From: Octopus sinensis
Taxonomy: Eukaryota
Reading direction: 5' to 3'
DNA length: 64,000 nt
Assembly (NCBI RefSeq): GCF_006345805.1
Contig: NC_043011.1
Location: 33,740,464 to 33,804,463 of the forward strand
This document shows positions 1,700-55,482 of this stretch, in pieces. Both the position numbers and the translations under genes were made by a program. A model generated the notes under the pieces. That model ran no database searches. It was given only the letters and a program-made list of their open reading frames with translations, and was not told the DNA's origin. The first letter of the stretch is position 1. Each line of letters opens with the position of its first letter.

Positions 1700-1873
1700 C
1701 ATTTGGGGAGAAGAGGTCTCGATCAAAGACACTAATACATAAGACATCTTGGTGCACATCTCGAATGACAAACTGCATTGAGTCATTCCATTTGGGATTA
1801 AGGGTTCCATTGATGACTTTGGTCCTATGTTCTTGGCTTCCCATGCTCACTTCACAATAAGGGTCACTTTTTC
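1700..1873 (-). CDS. ITSN: Intersectin C2 core exon: (G)[57 protein letters not shown]
   Basis: 174 nt, phase 1-1; acceptor ccctcag, donor G/gtcagt; C2 motifs SDPYC, TLNPKWN, VFDRD. The terminal exon was not found in 1-1699. Confidence 0.96.
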
Positions 1874-7898: not shown

Positions 7899-9236
7899 TT
7901 AATGACAATTCATGAGTCGGGTTTTTTTCTGTTAGTGTTTTTTTTTTGCTTTTTTTGCTTTTGCTTTTCCTCTGTTTACCCAAACAAGTTTTGAAGGCCC
8001 TGAAAAATGTTCAGATTTCTTTATTTTGTTTGTTTGTTTTTGGTTCATAGTTCTTTTTTTTTTTTTTTTTTAATTTTTGCATTTTTTGGTAGGGGCTACC
8101 AGTTTCCTGACTAAGCTATAAAAACAAAAACAAACAAAAAGCAAAAAACAAACAGAAGCAATGACTTTTTGCTGAACCTGAAGCTGCATCAATAGAAGCA
8201 ACATCTGCAACAACAGCAACAACAGCAACAACAGCAGCAAGAAAAGCAGCAGCACAACAGCACTTTAAAGCCATAAAAAATAAGATGGAAAAATCTGAGG
8301 AAATTAGTGTTAGTCTTCATCTATGAAGTTACCACCATCTTCCTATGACTAACACAATTCGTCCACTTCACTGCAAATTGCTATACTAGCAATGAACACT
8401 GGTTCCTGTCACCCATCACATAGTTGCTTCTATAAAAGGCCTGCGGTTGTGGAGTGGAATTATCGCCCACTTGTCTAAGTCAAAGATTAATAGGAGCACA
8501 CATGGGCTATGTGGTTAAGAAGCTTGCTCTGCAAAGCAGGTAGTTTGGGGTTCAGTCCCATTGTGGAGCACCTTGGGCAAGTGCCTTCTACTACAACACT
8601 GAGCTGGCCAATGCCTTGTGAGTAAATTTGGGAGGTGGAAATTGTGTGGAAGCCTGTCATGTGTGTGTGTGTGTGTTTGTATTTGTGTTTACCCTCAACT
8701 TCTCTTGACGGCCGGTGTTGCTTTATTTACATCCTCGTAACTTAGTGGTCTTTGAGAAGAAGACCAACAGAATAAGTACCAGACTTTAAGAAAAGGCTGA
8801 GTACTGAGGTTGATTTGTTTGACTAAACCTTTCAAGGCACTGCTCCAGCTTGGCTGCAGTCCATTGACCGAAACAAGTAAAAAAAAAAATAAACAAACAA
8901 TAAATAAAGATAAGACAGAAATATGAATGGAGTAGAATTACTAATATTCTCAATAATATTTTATCCATGTGAATTAGAGAGACCAAATGGAATGTTACAT
9001 TATTCCACATTTAACTCTAGCAAACACCAAAGTTATGAAAATAAGTTGATAACTACGAATGACCTTTCCATTTTTGGCACAGTTTCTATTGCTGGATGCC
9101 CTTCAAAATACCAACCATTTTACAAAATACCACTGACTGCATTTTTAAATTAAGCATCAGCAAGACTACAGAGCCCACTTGGCTCTAGTGCTCTTTTGAA
9201 TTTCGGGTCTTCTTAACTTAAAGGATTCTCCTAAAC

Positions 9237-9581
9237 CAATGGTTCTCAACCATTTCTTTACCTATGGACCACTTACATTACTTTACTATTTTATTCTGGT
9301 GGACCCTGTTCCCTATAGCCATTCAATGTTTAAAAACAAGTTTTATAGATACTTCTTCCAAAACTCCTATTCTGTTTATCAGATGTTCACTTATGTAGGT
9401 TTGCAATAGCATTCTTTGAGAGAATATTTCAGTGGCTGGAAACATTAGCGTAAGAAACCTAGTTGTTTCCAAAGCAAAACATTTTCATTGACCCTAAAAT
9501 ACTACTGTGGGTCTCCAACTTACTATTTTCCTACCATGGACCTCATAAAAACTTCATATAGACTCCAATTGAGAACCATTG
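9237..9581. mobile_element. hAT-type MITE
   Basis: TIR CAATGGTTCTCAA / TTGAGAACCATTG; perfect 8-bp TSD TCCTAAAC (9229-9236 and 9582-9589). Confidence 0.88.
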
Positions 9582-12070: not shown

Positions 12071-12148
12071 CATTCAAGTCACATGCCACAAGATTGATGC
12101 CCTCTAAAATCACAACCAGCAGACGTCCAATTCCTCCAGTCCGTTTGG
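12071..12148 (-). CDS. ITSN: Intersectin C2 beta1/loop1 alternative exon B: (S)KRTGGIGRLLVVILEGINLVACDLN(G)
   Basis: 78 nt, phase 1-1; long pyrimidine tract ending cactttctctcag, donor G/gtatgc; GIGRLxVxxxEGIxL motif of intersectin C2. Confidence 0.88.
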
Positions 12149-12205
12149 CTGAGAGAAAGTGAAAACAAAAACAAAAGAAAAAAGATAGAAAGAAAAAAAA
12201 ATAGC

Positions 12206-12298
12206 ATGCAAGTAAGGTAAAGGGTAGGTAGGAGAGGCTGAGCCATGCAGGGTGGATTATCAAGCAATGTTTGTGGCATAAAGTTAATAATACATGCA
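12206..12298 (-). promoter_or_regulatory. Cluster of three UGCAUG (RBFOX-type) intronic splicing motifs upstream of exon B
   Basis: Plus-strand CATGCA at 12206, 12244 and 12293, i.e. 58-150 nt upstream of the acceptor, in non-microsatellite sequence. Confidence 0.55.
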
Positions 12299-12699
12299 AG
12301 AACAATTACATGATGGGTGATATGGTTGATATCCTATTTTGAAATGTTGGAATAATAAATGGTATAGAATGAGATATCTAAGTTCTTGATAACATTTTAA
12401 CAGTGTCTGTTTGTTTTTGATATTGTTATTTTTTCTGTTTAGTTTCTTTTTAACACTACAGTGTAATAAATAATCATATTGCACACATGTAAACGCATAC
12501 AAATATCCATGTACAAACATGCACACACACACACATATATACACATATATACACTCTTACATACACACACTCCTAAATTAGTGTTAAATCTGTCAACAAA
12601 ATTTCACCCCTTCATATCAAACATGCACTAAATGTACAGTCCATAATATATTTCAGATCTATGCAAGGAGCAGGTTCCAAGTGAGGTGAATATCTATTG

Positions 12700-12736
<37 letters not shown>

Positions 12737-13862
12737 CACACACACACACAAAAGCCAAACTTGCTATCTTCAATTTGGTGTTTGTGCTTACCCTTGGTCA
12801 GGAATCTTAGGTAATGACTAAAGGAATGTGACCAAAGATTCTATTTCTTAACATTTTCTTATCATTGTCAAAGACTTTATCACTCTATTTTAATACGTCT
12901 ATGTTAACTATATTTTAACACCACAAAGGCTACAGAAAGCCTTACATTTTACTTTGGAAAATCTTTTTTTTTTTAAATGAAAGCCGGCAAGTCAATAAAC
13001 ATCTTTAAAATACCTCTGCATTTTCAAATCCTCTATATGCATGAAAATACATACCTAAAACATTGAAATCTGCATATACATACATACACACATACATACA
13101 TACATACAAAAATACCCTGTTACTGATGTTGAAATTCCAATGAAGGAACCTTAGATCTAGATTAGAAACCAGTTCTTTTTCTATTGGCAAGAAATCTTGA
13201 AATAAACTGAATAATGACATACATACATACATACATACATACATACATACATACATTCTATACCAACAGACAGACACTCTGTTAATCTATCTATGGTAAG
13301 GGTCTCACATATGTATTACTATAGTGAATTGAAAAACTTCAGTTAACTAGATTTAGCCATGTAATTAATTAGATGGCAAGAACCCATGCTAAAATATAAA
13401 AATCGAACACACGAACAAACTCAATCAAAAGCTAAAATGAGCCAAGGGGAATAACTCAAATGGGTCAGCATATTGGATATATGAGCCCCTATCATAGTAT
13501 TTGTATTTAGAAGGAAGAACACTTCTGTGAGATTATTCGCCCCACTCCACACTCAACCCTGTTTGTAGAAATTCACATTTACAGACACTCAAACACTGTG
13601 TGGGTTTTATAAATGAAGAAGTGAGAAGGGGCTCTATGGTTGTTATGATGATGTCAGATACATGCAACGGGGTTAATAAAACACATGCAAACAATGTTCA
13701 TTGTGCACCTAAAAAAAAACAAATGGACAAAAACAGGATAACAAAGTTATTTGATATAAATATTATTTTTCTATTTGAAAAGAGACAAGTGTTATTAGAT
13801 TCAAACAGATCAGTAAGAAACAAGAATTACATACATTAACAACAAACATAGATTATCTATAT

Positions 13863-14154
13863 CAGTGATTCTCAACCATTTTTTGCCTGTGGTCTCCTTT
13901 GATTCCCATTTTAATTGGGCAGGCCCTCACAGCCATTCGATGTCTAAAAATATCCCATTATATTTTAATAATTAAATATTATTAAGAATTGCTTAAAAAA
14001 TACTAAGACTTATGATACCTGAAAGAAGTATAAGCAATTTATTGCAGATAAATTTGAACAAAAGCAATTTTATATGGACCTCCAAAGGTCATATGAACCC
14101 CTAAGGATCATATGGAGCCACACGGGTCATATGGGGCTTGGTTGAGAACCACTG
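13863..14154. mobile_element. hAT-type MITE
   Basis: TIR CAGTGATTCTCAACC / GGTTGAGAACCACTG; 8-bp TSD ATCTATAT / ATCTACAT (7 of 8). Confidence 0.85.
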
Positions 14155-14489
14155 ATCTACATCAGCAACAAATTGTCAATGTCCACAATAAACATACAGT
14201 ATCTATGTCAATAACAAACATAAATTATGCACATTAGTAACAAACATAAATTATGTACATCAGTAACAAGCATAGAATTAATAATCTATAACAGGTATAA
14301 ATTATGAAAATTAGCTGAATGAGTAAAACTTCTAAATTTTAGATATTACTTCATTGTTAAAACTGAATCATTTTAATTTGCTTATATTTTTCTAAATGAG
14401 TCATTTTAAGTGATTTTCAATTGTTGTGTATGATACATTTAACCCCTCTGCAATCTCTCACACAGTTATACGAGAATCAGATTTAATTA

Positions 14490-14885
14490 TGGCTTTGATT
14501 CGGTCATCATTCAGTATGTTGACCAGAACGTTGGTCAACTTTGAGTGAAAAATCTCCAGAATGGAATTTTTTACTCCATTTCTGACATGTGTGTTCAGTT
14601 AAGCAATCAATACCATATACTTCACATATCCCTTTGTGAGCCTTGGCAGCTTTTTTGCCTTTGTGGAAATAAAAAAGCAAAATATGGTGAAAATGTTTGT
14701 CTTTGCACTCCATGTTAAAATTGACACTGAACTAACAGATGTAAACAAAATTACATGCAATTTGCTTCTAAAGTCAGCAAAAAGTAATGGCTATCAAATG
14801 TCAAAAGGAAAAAAAAAAATCATACAGTCGTAGTCATGGCCAATTTCATTGTTGCATAACTGGCCCATTTAAAAGCACCCTTTAA
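14490..14885 (-). mobile_element. Truncated mariner: 5' end plus N-terminal HTH coding remnant
   Basis: ORF 14507-14713 MECKDKHFHHILLFYFHKGKKAAKAHKGICEVYG...WSKKFHSGDFSLKVDQRSG is a mariner HTH; boundaries approximate. Confidence 0.8.
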
Positions 14886-16048
14886 TTGTTGGCTGATTGT
14901 GAAGACCTATTGAACCAAGTGAAATTTTAGTTGTGACCATGCCAGAGCCACCTAACTGGCACCTGTGCCAGTGACACATAAAAAACACACTTCGTGCATG
15001 GCCGATGCCAGAGCTGCCTGACTGGCATCCATGCTGGTAGCATGCAAAAAGCACCATTCAAGCATGGTTGATGCAAGTGTTGCCTGACTGGCACCTGTGC
15101 CAGTGATACGTAGAAAATATCGTCCAAGCGTGGATGATACCAGTGCTGCCTGACTCTCAGAGTAGTTGACATTAGGAAGAGCAGCCAGCTGTAGAAACTT
15201 TGCCAAATCAGATTGGAGCCTGGTGCAGCCTCCCGGCCTACCAATTCTCAGTCAAACCGTCCAACCCATGCCAGCAAGAAAAGTGGACACTAAATGACGA
15301 TGAAGATGATGATGATGATGATGATTGCCATATCACCAGAATCTTAAATTCACTGAATTCTTGGACTTTGGATGCCATATATTACTCTCAAGAATTAAAA
15401 CTATCATGATTTGAAAAGAGTTTGAACTGCAGGACCAAACCTAGAACTTCTTAACCTCATGCTCATATAACTTATATTATAAGAACTGAAGAAAGCTTAA
15501 AATCTTGTTAGCACATGATCAAGATCTCTCATCAACTTGGGGTTTTAGGCTAACTCAATATCTATGGCAATACTTAGTATGTTCACACCACCATAACAGA
15601 TTCACAGGTTTTAATAGGTTCCATACTTTAAGTTAAGCCTTTTGCTATTCACTTTCACAAATTTTCTTACCAACATAAGAAACTACACTTAAACTGAAGT
15701 TATGTAAGAAGAACAGGGGAAAATATTTAAATTACCTTGTTTTATTCTACACATGCAATTGAATTCTTCCTACTCTTGAGTAGTTGGTTGGCTGGCTGGC
15801 TGACTAAACATTCTAGAAGGGGCATTTAAATAACACTGCCAAAGAATTTGAAGATATCTACTTCCTATGTTAAAACTAATCCAAAGTGAAAATGATCTGC
15901 AGAGTTGAACAGGAAATGAGATGGGAGAAACAATCTAGAAATAGATAAAGCCTGCCATCATGCAGAAGCTTTTGAAACTTAATCTCAAAAAAATCTTAAT
16001 AATAACGTCTAATCAAATTCATGAATAATTTTTCTGCTTTAGCTTTAT

Positions 16049-16049
16049 C

Positions 16050-16114
<65 letters not shown>

Positions 16115-16131
16115 TAATAATAATAATAATG

Positions 16132-16192
<61 letters not shown>

Positions 16193-16203
16193 TAATAATA
16201 ATG

Positions 16204-16258
<55 letters not shown>

Positions 16259-16278
16259 TAATAATAATGATAATAATG

Positions 16279-16332
<54 letters not shown>
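16049..16332. repeat. (TAA)n microsatellite (representative)
   Basis: Others at 325-392, 700-760, 10063-10171, 11785-12018, 20020-20190, 41150-41228, 54918-55000. Confidence 0.95.
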
Positions 16333-16333
<1 letters not shown>

Positions 16334-16431
16334 GTGCTTGTCTGATATTGAAAGGCAGCATCGGACAAAACATCTAATTACAGGAGTCATCTTAATTCCA
16401 CAACAACCAGAGACTGACAGATGGATAAGAA

Positions 16432-16473
<42 letters not shown>

Positions 16474-17759
16474 ATGTAATGTATGAATTTGTATGACATT
16501 CAAGTTTAACAAATAAAAACCACTATTCAGCATGGATTATAAAATACTGAAGAAGATTGCACTGGAAATTGGCAACTGTTTAAAATATACCACTAAAAAG
16601 ATTGTGTGAATGTATGTGTTTGTGTGTGTCTGTGTACAGGTGCACGGGCACACATGCGATATTGTATAATAAGATATATCTTGAGAATCATCGCCAACAA
16701 TGTACATATAAACAGATGTAAAAATGATCTGTGTATTTAATTTCTAACACGGAATTGACAAAGGAAACATAAATGAGATCAATACTGTTCACAACGGATG
16801 CCTGAGGGAAAATTATTAAATCTTCTGGCCTGGCATAGTGTTAAATGAGGAACCATAATGTAAAACCAACTGTAGTAGAGCAGTTCTTGAAATAAAACAC
16901 CAATGGCTCAGATGGCTCCAACTTATGTTGTTTCAGGGCAGCATTAAGACAGACACCACCAAGGAACTGAAAACAAAACCTGCAATTTCATAGGAGGGTG
17001 TAAGTCAATTACATCAGCTCCAGTGATCAACTCCTACTTATTTTATCAACCCCATAAGGATGAAAATTCAAAGTTGACCTCAGGAAAATTTGAACTCAGC
17101 GCATAAAGATGGATGAAATGCTGCAAAACATTTTGCCCAGTGTGCTAACAATTCTGCCAGCTTGCTGCCCGGTCTGTTAAGATTTTTTTCATTTCCCTCT
17201 GTGCCAGTTCGCCATGCTCATCTGATAGTCAAAAGACCCTTTTTGATTTGTTTCTATTGTTGTTGTATTCATACAATTATTTTCTTTTTGTTGTATAGCC
17301 GAAAGGTGTTTGTCCATTGTATATGTATATTCTATTTCATAATGTTACGTTCGTCCCATAGTCAAAAGACCCTTCCTGTTATTTACTTATTTGTATTCGT
17401 ATATATACAAAAAATATTTCCTTCTTCTATTGTATAGCCAAAAGGCATTCTGTCATTTGTGTATAATTCTAGCTTTCTTGTTTTTGCTTCCATTTCTGTT
17501 TTCATTCTCGTACACATTTGTTTGCCTTTCCCAGAGGCTTAATGTTTTTAGCTTAAGTCCCTGGCCCTGCCAAATCTGAGTAGTATCAGAGATAAAGAGG
17601 TGAAACTACAAAGACATTTCAGACTCTAACTGAAAAAGTTTTTGGCTCGGAATGTTCTGTGTATCTTGTTTTAGTCCTGTTTGCCATTTGTCGTGCTATC
17701 GTCCATTTTTCTGCAAGTTGGTTTCTGTTTCTTGTTTTCTTTCTATTCTAACTTTGATT

Positions 17760-17795
<36 letters not shown>

Positions 17796-18203
17796 ATTGA
17801 AATTAAAATTAAATTTTTACATTTTTACATTTTGGCATTTTGCTGAGATTTTTTCTTGAGAACACATTCTTCGTGTTAATGGCAATTTGACGTCTATGTT
17901 TAGCATATAGGGTGTCCACTTTAGTGGTCATTCCTCTTAATTTTGTATGTATATATATATATTGAAAGGACCAATGGTCCTTTCTGAGCCAAAGGCTCAT
18001 AAGACTAATTTCCCAGAGTCTGTGTAGCATACATTTTTCCTCTGGACAAGATGCCAATCTGTTGCAGGATTACGCACTTTTACCAGGTGTGTGGACTGGT
18101 GCAACATGAAATGAAGTGTTTTGCTTAAGGATATCACTTAGTCCAGGAATCAAAACCACAATTTTATGATTACACTAACCACTATAGCATATGCCTGTCT
18201 CTT

Positions 18204-18242
<39 letters not shown>

Positions 18243-18550
18243 TATATATATATATATATATAATGTCATGTCCCACTATCTCCAACTGTGGCAGAATGTA
18301 CACCAACATAATGTACACCTCTATAGTATTTGAACTTTCAGAAAAAGATGTCAAGATTTATCTATTCTGTGATGTTATCGTCCTATCTCTTAGGTCACCA
18401 ACCTCTGTTTCTCTTTCCATTAATCATGCCTTCCAAACAGGTCTTGTTGATGTCACAGACCATTCACTTAATGTGACTAAGCTGTTTGAGTACTTTATAT
18501 ATATATATATGTGTGTGTATATATATATATATATATCTCACCCTTATTAA

Positions 18551-18593
<43 letters not shown>

Positions 18594-18731
18594 CATACAT
18601 ATATATATACATATATATATATATACATATAATATATATGTATATATATACATATATATATATGTATATATATATATATGTAGAAGGTTGAAAAGGAACA
18701 CACGAGTTGATATATATGAAAAATCAAGTCA

Positions 18732-18801
18732 AGATAGAAAATGCTAAAATAATTTTATAAAGAACATGTTCTTTATAAAATTATTTTAGCATTTTCTATC
18801 T
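18732..18801. repeat. Perfect 70-bp loopless palindrome
   Basis: AGATAGAAAATGCTAAAATAATTTTATAAAGAACA|TGTTCTTTATAAAATTATTTTAGCATTTTCTATCT, checked base by base. Confidence 0.95.
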
Positions 18802-18840
18802 CGACCTGTTTTTTCATATATATATACATATATATATATA

Positions 18841-19595
18841 TCATCATCATCATCATCATCATCGCTTAACGTCCGTTTTCCGCGCTAGCATGGGTTGGAC
18901 GGTTTGACCGGGGTCTGGGAAGCCAGGGACAGCACCAGGCTCCAGTCTGATCTGGCAGTGTCTCCACAGCTGGATGCCCTTCCTAACGCCAACCACTCCG
19001 CAAGTGTAGTGGGTGCTTTTTACGTGCCACCGGCATAGGTGCCAGGGGAGTCTGGCATCGGCCATGATCGGTTGGTGCTTTTAACGTGCCACCGGCACGG
19101 AAGCCAGCCAAGGCGGCGCTGGCATCGGCCACGTTCGGATGGTGCTTTTTATGTGCCACCGGCACAGAAGCCAGTCGAGGCGGCGCTGGCATCGGATACG
19201 TTCGGACGGTGCTTTTTATGTGCCACCGGCACAGAAGCCAGTCAAGGTGGCGCTGGCAACGGCCAAGTTCGGATGGTGCTTTTTATGTGCCACCGGCTCA
19301 GGTATCACAACTACTATTTCCATTGATATTTGTTTCGATGTTCATGTACATGCACTTGACTCAACAGGTCTCCTCAAGCACAGCAAGATGTTCTGGGATC
19401 CAAGGTACTTTGAATGGGCAGGGGCTATGCGGGACTGGTGCCAGAAGCAGCCCGGGTCTTTGCAGTCACAGCACATCTCCAGAGATCTCGGTCCTTCGCC
19501 ATTGCCTCAGTGAGGCCCAATGCTCTGAGGTCATGCTTGACTACCTCATCCCATGTCTTCCTGGGTCTACCTCTCCCCCTGATTCCTTCAACTGT
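18841..19595 (-). mobile_element. 5'-truncated RTE-clade LINE: ORF2 C-terminus, repeat-rich 3' UTR and (GAT)n tail
   Basis: Minus translation RGRPRKTWDEVVKHDLRALGLTEAMAKDRDLWRCAV; the 3' UTR has ~60-bp GTGCCACCGGCAC units; ends CTAGCGCGGAAAACGGACGTTAAGCGATGATGATG. Confidence 0.85.
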
Positions 19596-19610
19596 TTGGG
19601 AGCGGCACTA

Positions 19611-19685
<75 letters not shown>

Positions 19686-20024
19686 TTATATATATGTACA
19701 ACTTCATATCCAGTCTGCTAATCAGGAATGTGAAATTTGAATAACTAGATTTGAGGTACCAGCTACAATAACGTGTGTGTACATAGTTAAAAAAAAATTG
19801 GTGCTGAGCTTCTTCAAAGCTTGACATTTAGAAACCAAAAGCAATCTGCATCCCCATCACTCATGAGACCCAACTGACTAGAACTAAAGGGTGGATTGGT
19901 TCTAAATTAACAGATAAACAACAACATGGAACCAGGGAATCCAAGAATCCAGTCATCAGGTGACATAACAATGATGATAATGATAATCCTTTCTACTATA
20001 AGCACAAAGCCTGGAATAATAATA

Positions 20025-20062
<38 letters not shown>

Positions 20063-20138
20063 AATGAGGATGATGATGATAATAATAATAATAATGATAA
20101 TAATAATAATAATAATGATAATAATAATAATAATAATG

Positions 20139-20189
<51 letters not shown>

Positions 20190-20633
20190 GTGATCAGGAG
20201 CAGAAGTAGTGGGGGAGCATCATAGCCATGTGTTGAGAGGGATTCTTTGGGGTTTGAATAATTTACCTCTGGAAACATGAGTGGTTCTTTCAACATCATT
20301 AAACAACCCTTATTCAGGGACCTTTTGAGCAGGATGGGCTACTCAACCTGAAGAAATTTCTAACTGAGCCCCACCTGCAAGGTCATATGCTGTTTATCTT
20401 GATATGAGATCACCATGTCGCGCACATATGGTTGTGATGCATGTGCCTGGTGTACCCTTATCAGACGGGTAGTCATGATGGGTATATTGGGCTTCGTATA
20501 TTTTACCCCAGTGTCACTTTGATGGCATGAACTGCTCTCTCACTCAATAATAATAATAAACCTTTCTATTGGAGGCACAAGGCCTGCATAATAATAATTA
20601 TCTTTTCTACTATAGGCACAATGCCTGAATGAT

Positions 20634-20668
<35 letters not shown>

Positions 20669-20792
20669 AAAACAATGACAACAATATGCACTAAATTATT
20701 TTAGCTAAGATATGTCAAACAATTATGGTGTTACATTAGGAGGTTATTTGCACTCATGCAAAACAACAATAATAATAATAATAATAATAATA

Positions 20793-20841
<49 letters not shown>

Positions 20842-21417
20842 CAAAAAGATCTTGTGTGCTAGTATAAGAAATAATCTAATTAACATTAACAAAACAATAA
20901 CTATACAAGACATGATTAACTGACTAATTAAGCATTTCAATGTAAGAAGGCTTTAATTAATTTTGACAAATCCAAGACAGAGAAAAAAAAACAAATAAAC
21001 ATAATGAATAATAAATAAGTAGATTGACGAAAAAAGAAATTGAATGATGAAAAATAAGAGATTTAAGTTGTGATGTGGTAACTATAGCAACTGTATTTAT
21101 AAGGAGAAAAAAATCTATGTGAATAACGTGTTAAATAGAGCTAAACAAAAATAACATTTAGAAAGCAATTTACGTGAGTGTTTGTCAGTAATATATAAAA
21201 ACAAAACAGATATAGATATACATATACACACATATATATATATATTTATATACACATACACATACACACAAAAACAAAACATACACAAAGGTCAAGACAT
21301 AGCAATTCTAAATGACAATTCTAAACCAATGACCGGTGGAGGTCATCAGTGTTACTTTTGCAGTCTTCGTGCAGCGGAACTGCAAAGGTGAGGCAGCAGA
21401 AAGCTGACTTGTCTTAC

Positions 21418-21501
21418 CATTGCCGTGACTGGAAGCGCAAAGACTGATGCCCTCTTGCAGTATGACAAGGAGGCGTCCAACGGTGCGTGAACGTCTCGGA
21501 G
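21418..21501 (-). CDS. ITSN: Intersectin C2 beta1/loop1 alternative exon A: (S)PRRSRTVGRLLVILQEGISLCASSHGN(G)
   Basis: 84 nt, phase 1-1; acceptor ctgttcttccgtag, donor G/gtaaga; paralogous to exon B (shared TTGGACG, GAGGGCATCARTCTT, AATG/gta). Confidence 0.85.
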
Positions 21502-22892
21502 CTACGGAAGAACAGGTGACAGACAGATGAAGGTAATGGTAATTATCGTGTTGAGCGGAAATGGTGGATGAAATGTAGGGGAGAGGTGGGGGTGGGAGAT
21601 AAGAGAAAACATGAGGCAATGGTAACAACAACAAAAACATAAAGCAGATGTAGCATATATAAACAAAATAATTATAATATAAATAACAATAATAATAATT
21701 TTTTTTTCTCTGATAAGCACAAGACCTGAAATTTGTGGGGAGGCGGGGCTAGTTAATTTCATCGACCTCAGTATTTGACTGGTACTTATTTCATCAACCC
21801 CCAAAAGGATGAAAGGTAAAGTCGACCTCAGTGGAATTTGAACTCAGAACGTAAAGATAGACAAAATATTGCTTAGCATTTTGCTCGGCATGCTAACAAC
21901 TCTGCCAGCTTGCCAATAATGATATTAGTAATGCTTTGAAATTTTGGCACAGGGCCAGCAAGTTTGGAAAAGGGGATAAGTCGATTACATCGACCCCAGT
22001 GTTCGACTGGTACTTATTTCGTCAACCACAATGATGGAATTTGAACTCATGAAATACAGCTAAGCATTTTGTCCGGCATGCTAACAATTCTGCCAGCTTG
22101 CCAAAAATGATAATAATAATTCTTTCAAATTTTGGCACAAGGCCAGCAATTTTAAGGGAGAGAGTAAGTCGATTACGTTAACCCCAGTACTTGACTGGTA
22201 CTTTATTTTATCAACCCTGAAAGGATGAAAGGCAAAGTCGGCCTTAGCTGCATTTGAACTCAGAATGTAAAGAGCTAGGAAAAATACTAGAAGGCATTTT
22301 TTCCAAAGCTCTAATGATTCTGATAATCCAGTAATAGGTGAGGACAAGAATTTCACCCATCTGAAAAGAAATTTCTGAAATAAACATTTAAAAAAAACAA
22401 TACCAAAAATAAGCAAGAAATATATTAATATTTTAAGCAAGGAATATATTGATAAATACAAATATTCTATAAATCATATAAACTTCATACACACATAGAC
22501 ACATACACACAAATACATAGGCACAAATACACACACATGCACACAAATATACACACACATGTAAACATTATGGTTATTAAGATTTTTGTAAATGTAAACC
22601 CATAAAATTATCCTTGCGGAAAGTTTCACAGAGTGTAATATATGTGAATGTGTGCATGCATACATGTGTGAGTACGTATATGTCTATCGCTAGCTACTAT
22701 ACCTTTTTTTATTTTCTCTCTGTTTATTTCTGTGTTCCTCTCTGTTAAAGAGCATAGGCTCGAAACATTAAAGACTTTCTCACTTCCCGATCGTTAAGCT
22801 AATACATTTGTTTATTGTTCACACACCCGTCTTCATCTTTTGTTTTGTTTTCTTGTAAATTCCAACTATATATATATATATATATATATATA

Positions 22893-24157
22893 TTGGGTTG
22901 GCAACTAAGTTCCCACCATTTAAAAAATTTTTGAATCTATTTTTTTTTGAGAATTCTATTTTTGAATCATTTTGGAATCTATTTTATTATTTTTCTAGTT
23001 AATTTTAGTTAATTTTTGTTTATTTTCAGATCATTAAAATGGAATGTCAAGTTAAGAAAAATGAGCATTTTCGACAGCTTTTTGCTTTTAATCAAGGGTC
23101 TAAGGCTGCAAAAGCTGCTCGCGACATTTGTTCCGTGTATGGAGAGGGTGCCATAGTTGAAAGAACCACTCATGATTGGTATGCCAAGTTCAAAATTGGA
23201 AATTTTGACCTCAAAGACACACCTCAATCTGGCCGTCCAGTTGAGTTCGATGAAGAGAGATTAAACCAACTTTTGCACAAATATTCTCGTCAAACGACAA
23301 GGGAACTGGCAGACAAAATGGAATGCTCCCACACTGCTATGGAGAAGCATCTTCATTTGATGGGAAAGTTTCAGAAGTATGGAGTACGAGTTCTGCATGC
23401 TTTAAGTAACAATAACAAAAATCAATGAGCCACAATCTCCGCTAGATTGCTTGCTCATCACTGCTCAACTCATGGACACAAGCAACGATTTCTTTACTGA
23501 ATCATTACTGGCAATGAAAAATGGTGCCTGTACATTAATATGAAGTAGCATAAATAATGGCTTAGCCCCAGTAAACAAGTGACACCGCGTGTGAAACAAG
23601 ATCTTCATCTGCGTAAAACGATGCTGTGCGTATGGTGGGATTGGGAAGGGATTATCCATTACAAATTGCTTGAACGGAACCAAACGGTCAACGTGGAACT
23701 CTATGTTCAACAGATGGAACAACTCAACATGGCTATTCAAGAGAAAAGACTTAATTAGCAGCATGGAGTTCTTCTGCTGCATGACAACGCCCACCCTCAT
23801 ATCGCCAATATGACTAAGGAAGCCATTCAAATGCATGACAGGCAAGTGCTGTCACACCCGCCGTACTCTCCTGATTTGGCACCAGTGGATTTCTACTTCT
23901 ATCAATCTCTTTCAAATGCTATGCACGGACTTTCGTTCAATACTGATACAGAATTGAGAGCTTGGTTGGATCAATTTTTCGAGTTGAAATCGAGTGATTT
24001 CTGCCAATGAGATATTGAAAATTTTGTTGAACTTTGGGAAGAAGTTGTAAACAACAAGGGTGAATACATTATTGATTAATTAGTTTTTATTTTTAATTAA
24101 ACCTTTTAAAAAATTTAAATTTAAAAAAAACCGGCAGGAACTTAGTTGCCAACCAAA
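22893..24157 (+). mobile_element. Full-length (1265 bp) inactive mariner (DD34D) transposon inserted in a (TA)n tract
   Basis: TIR TTGGGTTGGCAACTAAGTTCC / GGAACTTAGTTGCCAACCAAA, TA on both sides, contains a transposase frame. Confidence 0.93.
23039..24079 (+). pseudogene. Mariner transposase pseudogene (347 codons, no net frameshift, six internal stops)
   Basis: MECQVKKNEHFR...SGRP...ITGNEKW...LLHDNAHPH...HPPYSPDLAPVDF...GEYIID*; 34 residues between the second and third D; first catalytic D is N. Confidence 0.92.
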
Positions 24158-41647: not shown

Positions 41648-41730
41648 ACAGATATGCTTTCTCATTCTTTTTCCTCTCTGTCTCCAAGTAGTACCTTGAA
41701 GCTGTCTCTATTTTCTTCACCCATACACCT
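41648..41730 (-). CDS. ITSN: Intersectin PH C-terminal helix exon: (R)GVWVKKIETASRYYLETERKKNEKAYL(S)
   Basis: 83 nt, phase 2-1; acceptor ttgttgttgcag, donor gtaagt; WVxKI...YxETExKK.EKAYL motif. Ends on a T that completes TCT or TCC (Ser) with either alternative exon. Confidence 0.93.
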
Positions 41731-55314: not shown

Positions 55315-55482
55315 TTCATCCAGACCTTCACAGAGTACATGCTGCTGGATCCATTCTAGATCATTGGAGTTTTCCTTCTCTCGCACTCCTTCATTCACTT
55401 GGCTACATAGTTCTTCAGCTTTCGCTAAGGCATCGACCAGATGCAAATGGTCAGGGTGTTCTTCTGGGGTGTGTTTCAAAAT
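55315..55482 (-). CDS. ITSN: Intersectin DH C-terminal exon: [56 protein letters not shown]
   Basis: 168 nt, phase 0-0; acceptor gttttgattag, donor gtacgt; [17 protein letters not shown] motif. Confidence 0.96.

Follow-up and report, generated by a model that had tools for sequence, protein, structure and literature searches.

Why does a gene carry two versions of one small exon side by side at the beginning of a protein domain? The question is raised by a 64,000-nucleotide (nt) stretch of the Octopus sinensis genome (RefSeq assembly GCF_006345805.1, contig NC_043011.1, positions 33,740,464 to 33,804,463), hereafter the window, in which an intersectin gene on the minus strand contains two homologous exons, A and B, between the exon that ends the PH domain and the exon that encodes the core of the C2 domain. 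We consider it probable that A and B are two functional, mutually substitutable versions of one intersectin exon that arose by an ancient tandem duplication, with one of them most likely present in each mRNA.

All four exon junctions around the pair were read and translated. The exons on which the argument is built are the following, with a slash marking the border between exon and intron:

55315–55482, minus strand: DH-domain exon; best PDB matches are the Intersectin-1 DH-PH structures 3qbv and 1ki1 (E=2.6e-22); splice sites read
41648–41730, minus strand: PH-end exon, constitutive, 83 nt, end of the PH domain and linker, peptide GVWVKKIETASRYYLETERKKNEKAYL; donor ...CTGT/gtaagt, phase 1
21418–21501, minus strand: exon A, alternative, 84 nt, phase 1-1, peptide (S)PRRSRTVGRLLVILQEGISLCASSHGN(G); acceptor ttcttccgtag/, donor GCAATG/gtaaga
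12071–12148, minus strand: exon B, alternative, 78 nt, phase 1-1, peptide (S)KRTGGIGRLLVVILEGINLVACDLN(G); acceptor ctttctctcag/, donor TGAATG/gtatgc
1700–1873, minus strand: C2 core exon, constitutive, 174 nt, phase 1-1, 58 residues; starts GA AAA AGT GAC CCT and encodes GKSDPYCEV...FDRDLFSPN

The match of the DH-domain exon to Intersectin-1 identifies the gene as long-form intersectin. The PH-end exon corresponds to positions 123–151 of the 155 positions of Pfam PH_13, a match below the curated cut-off with only the end of the domain present, and has orthologues at several of the loci from other animals described below (L003, L004, L005-7, L010, and L013). The sequence for the last three strands of the C2 domain lies outside the window and was seen in an orthologous contig (locus L001, 13642–13785). 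When completed with this last exon, the C2 domain has human Intersectin 2 (3jzy) as its best match (E=1.7e-47), and the next matches, ferlins and synaptotagmins, are about 18 orders of magnitude behind (E=1e-29 or weaker). The intron position ahead of GKSDPY is common to dozens of genomic open reading frames (ORFs) of other animals. An exact look-up of the core ORF of the window, and one of the Limulus match P0032, gave no record. Judged from its DH-to-C2 part in the window, the gene is an intersectin of the long form, with DH, PH, and C2 in that order; the regions for the EH, coiled-coil, and SH3 domains fall outside the window.

The PH-end exon reads ...GCATATCTGT/gtaagt at its 3' end and leaves phase 1. 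With the T carried over from this exon and the GA of the core exon, exon A reads SPRRSRTVGRLLVILQEGISLCASSHGNG, and exon B, joined in the same way, reads SKRTGGIGRLLVVILEGINLVACDLNG. The homology of the two exons is detectable without outside data, as exon A finds exon B by tblastn within the window (E=2e-4). A profile hidden Markov model (HMM) of 20 exons of this kind, taken from all loci, has two matches in the window, A and B, with E=4e-12 and 5e-11. Neither tblastn nor the profile HMM reveals a third copy in the 64 kb, the next profile match having E=3. No other intersectin-like coding match lies between the PH-end and core exons, homologous exons being the only kind detectable in this way. 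The aligned exons are identical at 42 of 75 nucleotides (56%) and 13 of 27 residues. The preliminary description of this DNA gave coordinates and peptides for both exons that agree in every detail with our reading of the junctions. It had also presented A and B as intact exons with good splice sites, a shared end AATG/gta, and largely diverged synonymous positions; both exons are indeed open, bounded by AG and GT, and in phase 1-1, both have this end, and the proportion of differences is 0.70 at synonymous sites (pS) versus 0.34 at nonsynonymous sites (pN).

Conservation of the pair can be observed in a second cephalopod-like genome. The genomic ORF closest to the core exon (P0005, with a protein identity of 91% and a DNA identity of 82.6%) belongs to a 206-kb ENA contig, ERZ21867824 ctg117874l. 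In this contig, no exon for beta-strand 1 (beta1 exon) lies within 10 kb upstream of the core exon (locus L001). The view of the contig was extended upstream through an ORF at the edge of the locus, and the new stretch, L011, holds orthologues of both exons in the same order and with the same lengths:

L011 15921–16004, minus strand: orthologue of exon A, 84 nt, SLKHSCVVGRLLVILQEGIDLTPSSHGNG; AG acceptor, GT donor
L011 12112–12189, minus strand: orthologue of exon B, 78 nt, SKTMRGVGRLLVVIAEGADLVACDKNG; AG acceptor, GT donor

In L011, the AG acceptors follow pyrimidine tracts, and the donors read G/GTAAG or G/GTAGG. The exons are reciprocal best matches, A with its counterpart at 20 of 28 residues and B with its counterpart at 18 of 26. 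From GRLLV to the exon end, 18 of 21 residues are identical in A, including the odd SSHGNG loop, and 16 of 20 in B. The comparison between the window and this genome yields pS 0.78 and pN 0.21 for exon A (Fisher p=4e-6), pS 0.72 and pN 0.23 for exon B (p=3e-4), and pS 0.73 and pN 0.047 for the core exon (p=1.6e-16). The introns of the two genomes show no similarity, and no conserved intronic elements were found next to A, B, or the core exon. Because synonymous sites are saturated and pN is low, both A and B are under purifying selection; by this measure, both exons are kept in two deeply diverged cephalopod-like genomes. The preliminary description had supposed an old duplication with both copies retained, and had named conservation and selection in related genomes as the check. 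Both exons are conserved there with pN far below pS, and the duplication is older and more widespread than had been supposed.

The same data bear on a rival explanation, that the resemblance of A and B is due to chance or that one of them is an assembly artefact, either a haplotype or a collapsed duplicate. The small size of the exons speaks for it, and nothing else does. The profile matches of A and B are strong and have no companion in the window, and an independent assembly, from another species, has both exons. An assembly duplicate is also at odds with the 56% identity of A and B in DNA. The orthologues in L011 and the profile search together refute this explanation, to which we assign a negligible probability.

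What A and B contribute to the protein is seen from the match to the Pfam C2 profile (PF00168, cut-off 22 bits). This match covers positions 1–77 with 75.3 bits if exon B is included, positions 2–77 with 66.9 bits if exon A is included, and positions 18–77 with 64.0 bits if both are omitted. Thus, the first ~17 positions of the domain, with strand 1 and loop 1, can come from either A or B, and skipping of both exons would delete beta-strand 1, as had been expected from the first reading of the sequence. Exon B aligns without gaps to residues 380–406 of human ITSN2 (3jzy), with 14 of 27 residues identical and a score of 72; exon A needs two gaps and scores 23. The ungapped alignment identifies B as the ancestral type.

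The two exons differ at a position predicted to matter for calcium. The loop-1 Ca2+ ligands of PKC-alpha (D187 and D193) and of the synaptotagmin-1 C2A domain (D172 and D178) are spaced by six residues. The full set of five acidic ligands in C2 domains of this type also includes D-x-D and another Asp in loop 3, six residues farther. Exon B has the same spacing, since its loop 1, CDLNGKSDPY, places an Asp six residues ahead of the Asp of SDPY. Exon A has His/Ser at the loop-1 Asp position, with His at the position of the Ca2+ ligand itself, and its loop is one residue longer and non-canonical. The core exon adds the ligand positions in SDPY (the Asp) and FDRD, three in total, so that four acidic ligands are visible in the window with exon B; the fifth (SPN/D) is encoded by the next exon, as seen in the orthologous locus L001. 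On these homologous positions, exon B completes the canonical set of five Asp ligands.

Similar arrays are found in other invertebrates. The 10-kb flanks around core-exon ORFs of other animals were searched by tblastn and the profile HMM, with the following result:

L004, ERZ26696912: two beta1 exons
L005-7, three near-identical contigs of ERZ25072384: three beta1 exons
L010, ERZ26052287: three beta1 exons
L002, ERZ25069853: at least two beta1 exons
L009, ERZ25073293: at least two beta1 exons
L008, Bugula neritina (bryozoan), GCA_010799875.2: two beta1 exons
L003, ERZ25084518: one beta1 exon
L013, ERZ25067546: one beta1 exon

All copies found are in phase 1-1, have a length of 63–90 nt that is a multiple of three, and are bounded as AG...G/GT. 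In L004, L005-7, and L010, they are located between the PH-end and core exons, as in the octopus, and the three exons of L006 and L010 correspond to each other copy by copy. The introns of these other loci show no conservation. Every array seen in full contains one copy with an x[SC]Dxx-G loop, the others having either no Asp or a displaced one. Given this difference within each such array, the choice of exon is predicted to tune or remove Ca2+ coordination.

Among non-cephalopod loci, exon A is matched best by the first and exon B by the second of the two L004 exons, in the same order. This correspondence suggests that the split between A and B predates the separation of these lineages, at the low phylogenetic power that 20–28 residues provide. 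A more general version of this history is tentative, and we give it somewhat less than an even chance. According to it, an array of two or three members predates the split of cephalopods, the bryozoan, and other invertebrates, and switches the C2 domain between a Ca2+-sensing version with all the Asp ligands and versions that are Ca2+-insensitive or differently tuned; vertebrates, with a single beta1 exon and no Asp, would have frozen one state.

Two loci deserve separate mention. The Bugula ITSN1 gene model (P0045, VXIV02000096.1) uses the second beta1 exon only; an intact upstream copy with a canonical Asp loop (KGIGRLLVIVMEGVGLTASDANG) at L008 9561–9647 is left out of this model. In L005, the first beta1 exon (8135–8212) has its frame broken by a 1-nt homopolymer deletion relative to L006 (8119–8208) and L007; the L005 contig has 6x coverage, and the deletion reflects either an error in the assembly or a polymorphism in which this copy is lost. 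The use of the haplotype contigs L005-7 as a test of polymorphism was rejected, as their identity of ~99.3% leaves it without power.

The next question is whether A and B are used one at a time. In five cDNA-derived ORFs of other taxa (P0001, P0002, P0065, P0066, and P0069), the PH-end exon is followed by one beta1 exon and then by the core exon. Two further cDNA-derived ORFs, P0003 and P0004, also have one beta1 copy each, P0003 being without coverage of the upstream junction with the PH-end exon. Both types of loop are represented, the non-canonical one in P0065 and the canonical one in P0003. With the five ORFs as indirect support, an octopus mRNA most likely contains a single one of the two exons. 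The two exons have complementary splice-site pairs: in exon A, a short CU-rich 3' splice site goes with a strong 5' splice site, and in exon B, a very strong 3' splice site with a very long U-rich tract (~50 nt ahead of its acceptor) goes with a weaker 5' splice site, GUAUGC. Our working guess, prompted by these splice-site sequences, is that the choice may be made by factor-regulated use of the two pairs.

Several observations weigh against this picture. When the spliced A isoform was used as a query against the protein collection, it retrieved only core-exon genomic ORFs, together with some cDNA ORFs from other taxa, and no cephalopod transcript; an ORF containing both A and B had no match in the collection, and exon A compared with 1.84 billion representative proteins retrieved one spurious repeat protein only. 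The lengths of A and B are both multiples of three, so that transcripts with both exons or with neither keep the frame and would not be removed by nonsense-mediated decay (NMD); thus, the reading frame does not enforce exclusivity. Nor is a steric block to be expected, as the intron between A and B is 9.3 kb long, and all splice sites are of the U2-type GT-AG class (donors GTAAGA and GTATGC), so that incompatibility of U2 and U12 sites does not operate either. No conserved competing RNA structure was found around A and B in the window, in L011, or in the compact arrays of other animals. Exon A adds only ~3 bits to the C2 profile score, in comparison with ~11 bits for exon B, which marks A as a divergent strand 1. 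Finally, the Ca2+ consequence rests on homology to the ligand positions of PKC and synaptotagmin, and in vertebrate ITSN several of these Asp residues have been lost from the C2 domain.

Some of these points would be accommodated if A and B were independent cassette exons, with transcripts that contain both or neither present in appreciable amounts and an extra copy serving as a longer PH-C2 linker. Lengths divisible by three would permit this, the junction of A with B (...HGN-A-KRT...) contains no stop, and a mechanism that enforces exclusivity was not found. However, double skipping loses C2 profile positions 1–17, each of the five cDNA-derived ORFs of other taxa includes exactly one copy, and many lineages have retained arrays of this design, which is more in keeping with substitution than with addition. 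We therefore regard independent inclusion as unlikely, and substitution of one exon for the other is retained as the preferred explanation.

The search for regulatory RNA structure produced one candidate near exon A:

21408–21632, minus strand: candidate hairpin looping out exon A; 16 bp, -21.5 kcal/mol, z=-3.3 versus shuffled flank

One arm of this putative hairpin (21614–21632, GUUGUUGUUACCAUUGCCU) is located 113 nt upstream of exon A, and the other (21408–21425, CGGCAAUG/GUAAGACAAG) coincides with the 5' splice site of exon A; the stem is present in both the minimum free energy and the centroid folds. The hairpin is absent from L011, and constitutive-exon controls reach similar z-scores. 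In duplexes between donors and flanks, z-scores likewise do not separate alternative from constitutive exons. Among the inverted repeats of the compact arrays L004, L006, and L010, some stems touch splice sites of exons a, b, and c of L006. In L006, the intron that separates beta1 exons a and b contains a short docking-like segment (8546–8593) with complementarity to three sites, one just after the exon a donor (8240–8254), one at the exon b donor (8838–8860), and one at the exon c acceptor (9484–9501). Docking/selector pairing in L006 was rejected, as its numbers are within the range of chance and it has no mirror in L010.

The candidate hairpin would hide the 5' splice site of exon A, and this is one of three observations that could be explained if one of the two exons, with the divergent A as the likeliest candidate, were a non-functional relic with little or no inclusion in transcripts. 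The other two are the weaker score of A against the C2 profile and the lack of an A-containing protein among the 1.84 billion representatives. However, a relic would decay like the surrounding intron, which shows no similarity between the two genomes, whereas exon A is kept in L011 despite saturated synonymous divergence, with its 84 nt, its AG and GT borders, and 18 of 21 residues (p=4e-6). A relic is thus very improbable, well behind independent inclusion, and we continue to treat A as a functional counterpart of B.

Some features of the surrounding DNA can be noted separately. The introns of the octopus gene contain two remnants of mariner/Mos1-type transposases (Pfam HTH_48), one at 23039–23428 on the plus strand, between the PH-end exon and A, and one at 14507–14713 on the minus strand, between A and B (E=5e-15 and 6e-19, respectively). 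Three exons (PH-end, B, and core) have long microsatellites of the (ATT)n type near their donors. A minisatellite in L001 (6279–6571), located in the intron ahead of the core C2 exon, consists of 5.4 copies of a 54-nt unit, about 27 nt of which are copied from the 3' end of the core exon (ACAGTCTTTGATCGAGATCTCTT, translated as TVFDRDLFS). One contig (L012 and L013, ERZ25067546 ctg57960_37x_l, 162581–196357) contains two copies of the C2 core and C2 end exons at a distance of 13.3 kb, each with an ORF for a seven-transmembrane G-protein-coupled receptor nested antisense in the upstream intron. The repeat is due either to a tandem segmental duplication or to an artefact of assembly; the taxon has only one beta1 exon.

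How does the pair compare with known systems? Clusters of mutually exclusive exons (MXEs) formed by tandem exon duplication include exons 5a/5b of SNAP25, exons 8/8a of CACNA1C, and those of Drosophila 14-3-3zeta, Mhc, and Dscam1. Criteria for such clusters and surveys of them are available (PMC3228551, PMC9741552, PMC6071210); intersectin and its C2 domain are not among the surveys that could be searched. Like the members of these clusters, A and B are neighboring homologous exons in one interval between constitutive exons, similar in length, in the same phase at both ends, with intact and conserved splice sites, and encode the same structural element; they are also ancient, with both copies under purifying selection. 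Unlike in the known clusters, the exclusive use of A and B is inferred, lengths divisible by three and long introns leave no room for enforcement by NMD or steric hindrance, and docking/selector RNA pairing is not established. At the level of sequence, the intersectin pair can be described as a new instance of the class of tandem-duplicated exons. The full-text literature searched contains no description of a duplicated beta1 exon in intersectin, in agreement with the preliminary description, which knew of none.

A functional parallel is provided by the C2A and C2Av1 variants of dysferlin (PMC3898210), in which an alternative exon replaces the N-terminal segment of a C2 domain; its fold stays the same, and its membrane binding differs in Ca2+ dependence. 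The dysferlin variants originate from alternative first exons and promoters and not from an internal tandem pair, and the difference in Ca2+ response was measured there, whereas it is predicted here. Vertebrate ITSN-1L and ITSN-2L belong to the same family and have the same order of DH, PH, and C2, exon B being alignable to ITSN2 without gaps; vertebrate ITSN2 (3jzy) differs in having Lys at the loop-1 position (ACKPNG) and SNPY in place of SDPY. The known splice variants of vertebrate ITSN genes, including the short and long forms, the SH3A microexon, and others, affect other parts of the gene (PMC9519902). Reviews go no further than the statement that the C2 domain of ITSN "may bind Ca2+" (PMC12559987, PMC3753573), and one of them ascribes to invertebrate intersectin only the short layout of EH, coiled-coil, and SH3 domains (PMC3753573). 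Contrary to this description, the DH-PH-C2 extension is encoded in the octopus, in the bryozoan, and in other invertebrate contigs.

Taken together, these observations are best explained by the following scenario. An ancient tandem duplication would have produced A and B in long-form intersectin, each encoding the end of the PH-C2 linker, beta-strand 1, and Ca2+-binding loop 1, and the exons would be used singly, one per transcript. The B isoform is predicted to have a C2 domain that binds membranes in a Ca2+-dependent manner, and in the A isoform the coordination of Ca2+ may be weakened, lost, or altered. The choice of exon would then set the Ca2+ response of the Cdc42 guanine nucleotide exchange factor (GEF) arm of intersectin at membranes, for instance at synapses, and is probably made by tissue-specific splicing factors.

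For the study of exon evolution, the pair adds a deep case spanning several phyla to the small set of ancient substitutions between tandem-duplicated exons, a type of splicing event that is unusually often functional (PMC9741552). For the study of C2 domains, a conserved exon switch by which a canonical Ca2+ ligand is gained or lost would amount to a natural paired experiment, in which the same protein is available with and without the ligand. If the more tentative history of an ancient Ca2+ switch is true, neurons would gain isoform-level control over the Ca2+-dependent recruitment of a Cdc42-GEF and endocytic scaffold.

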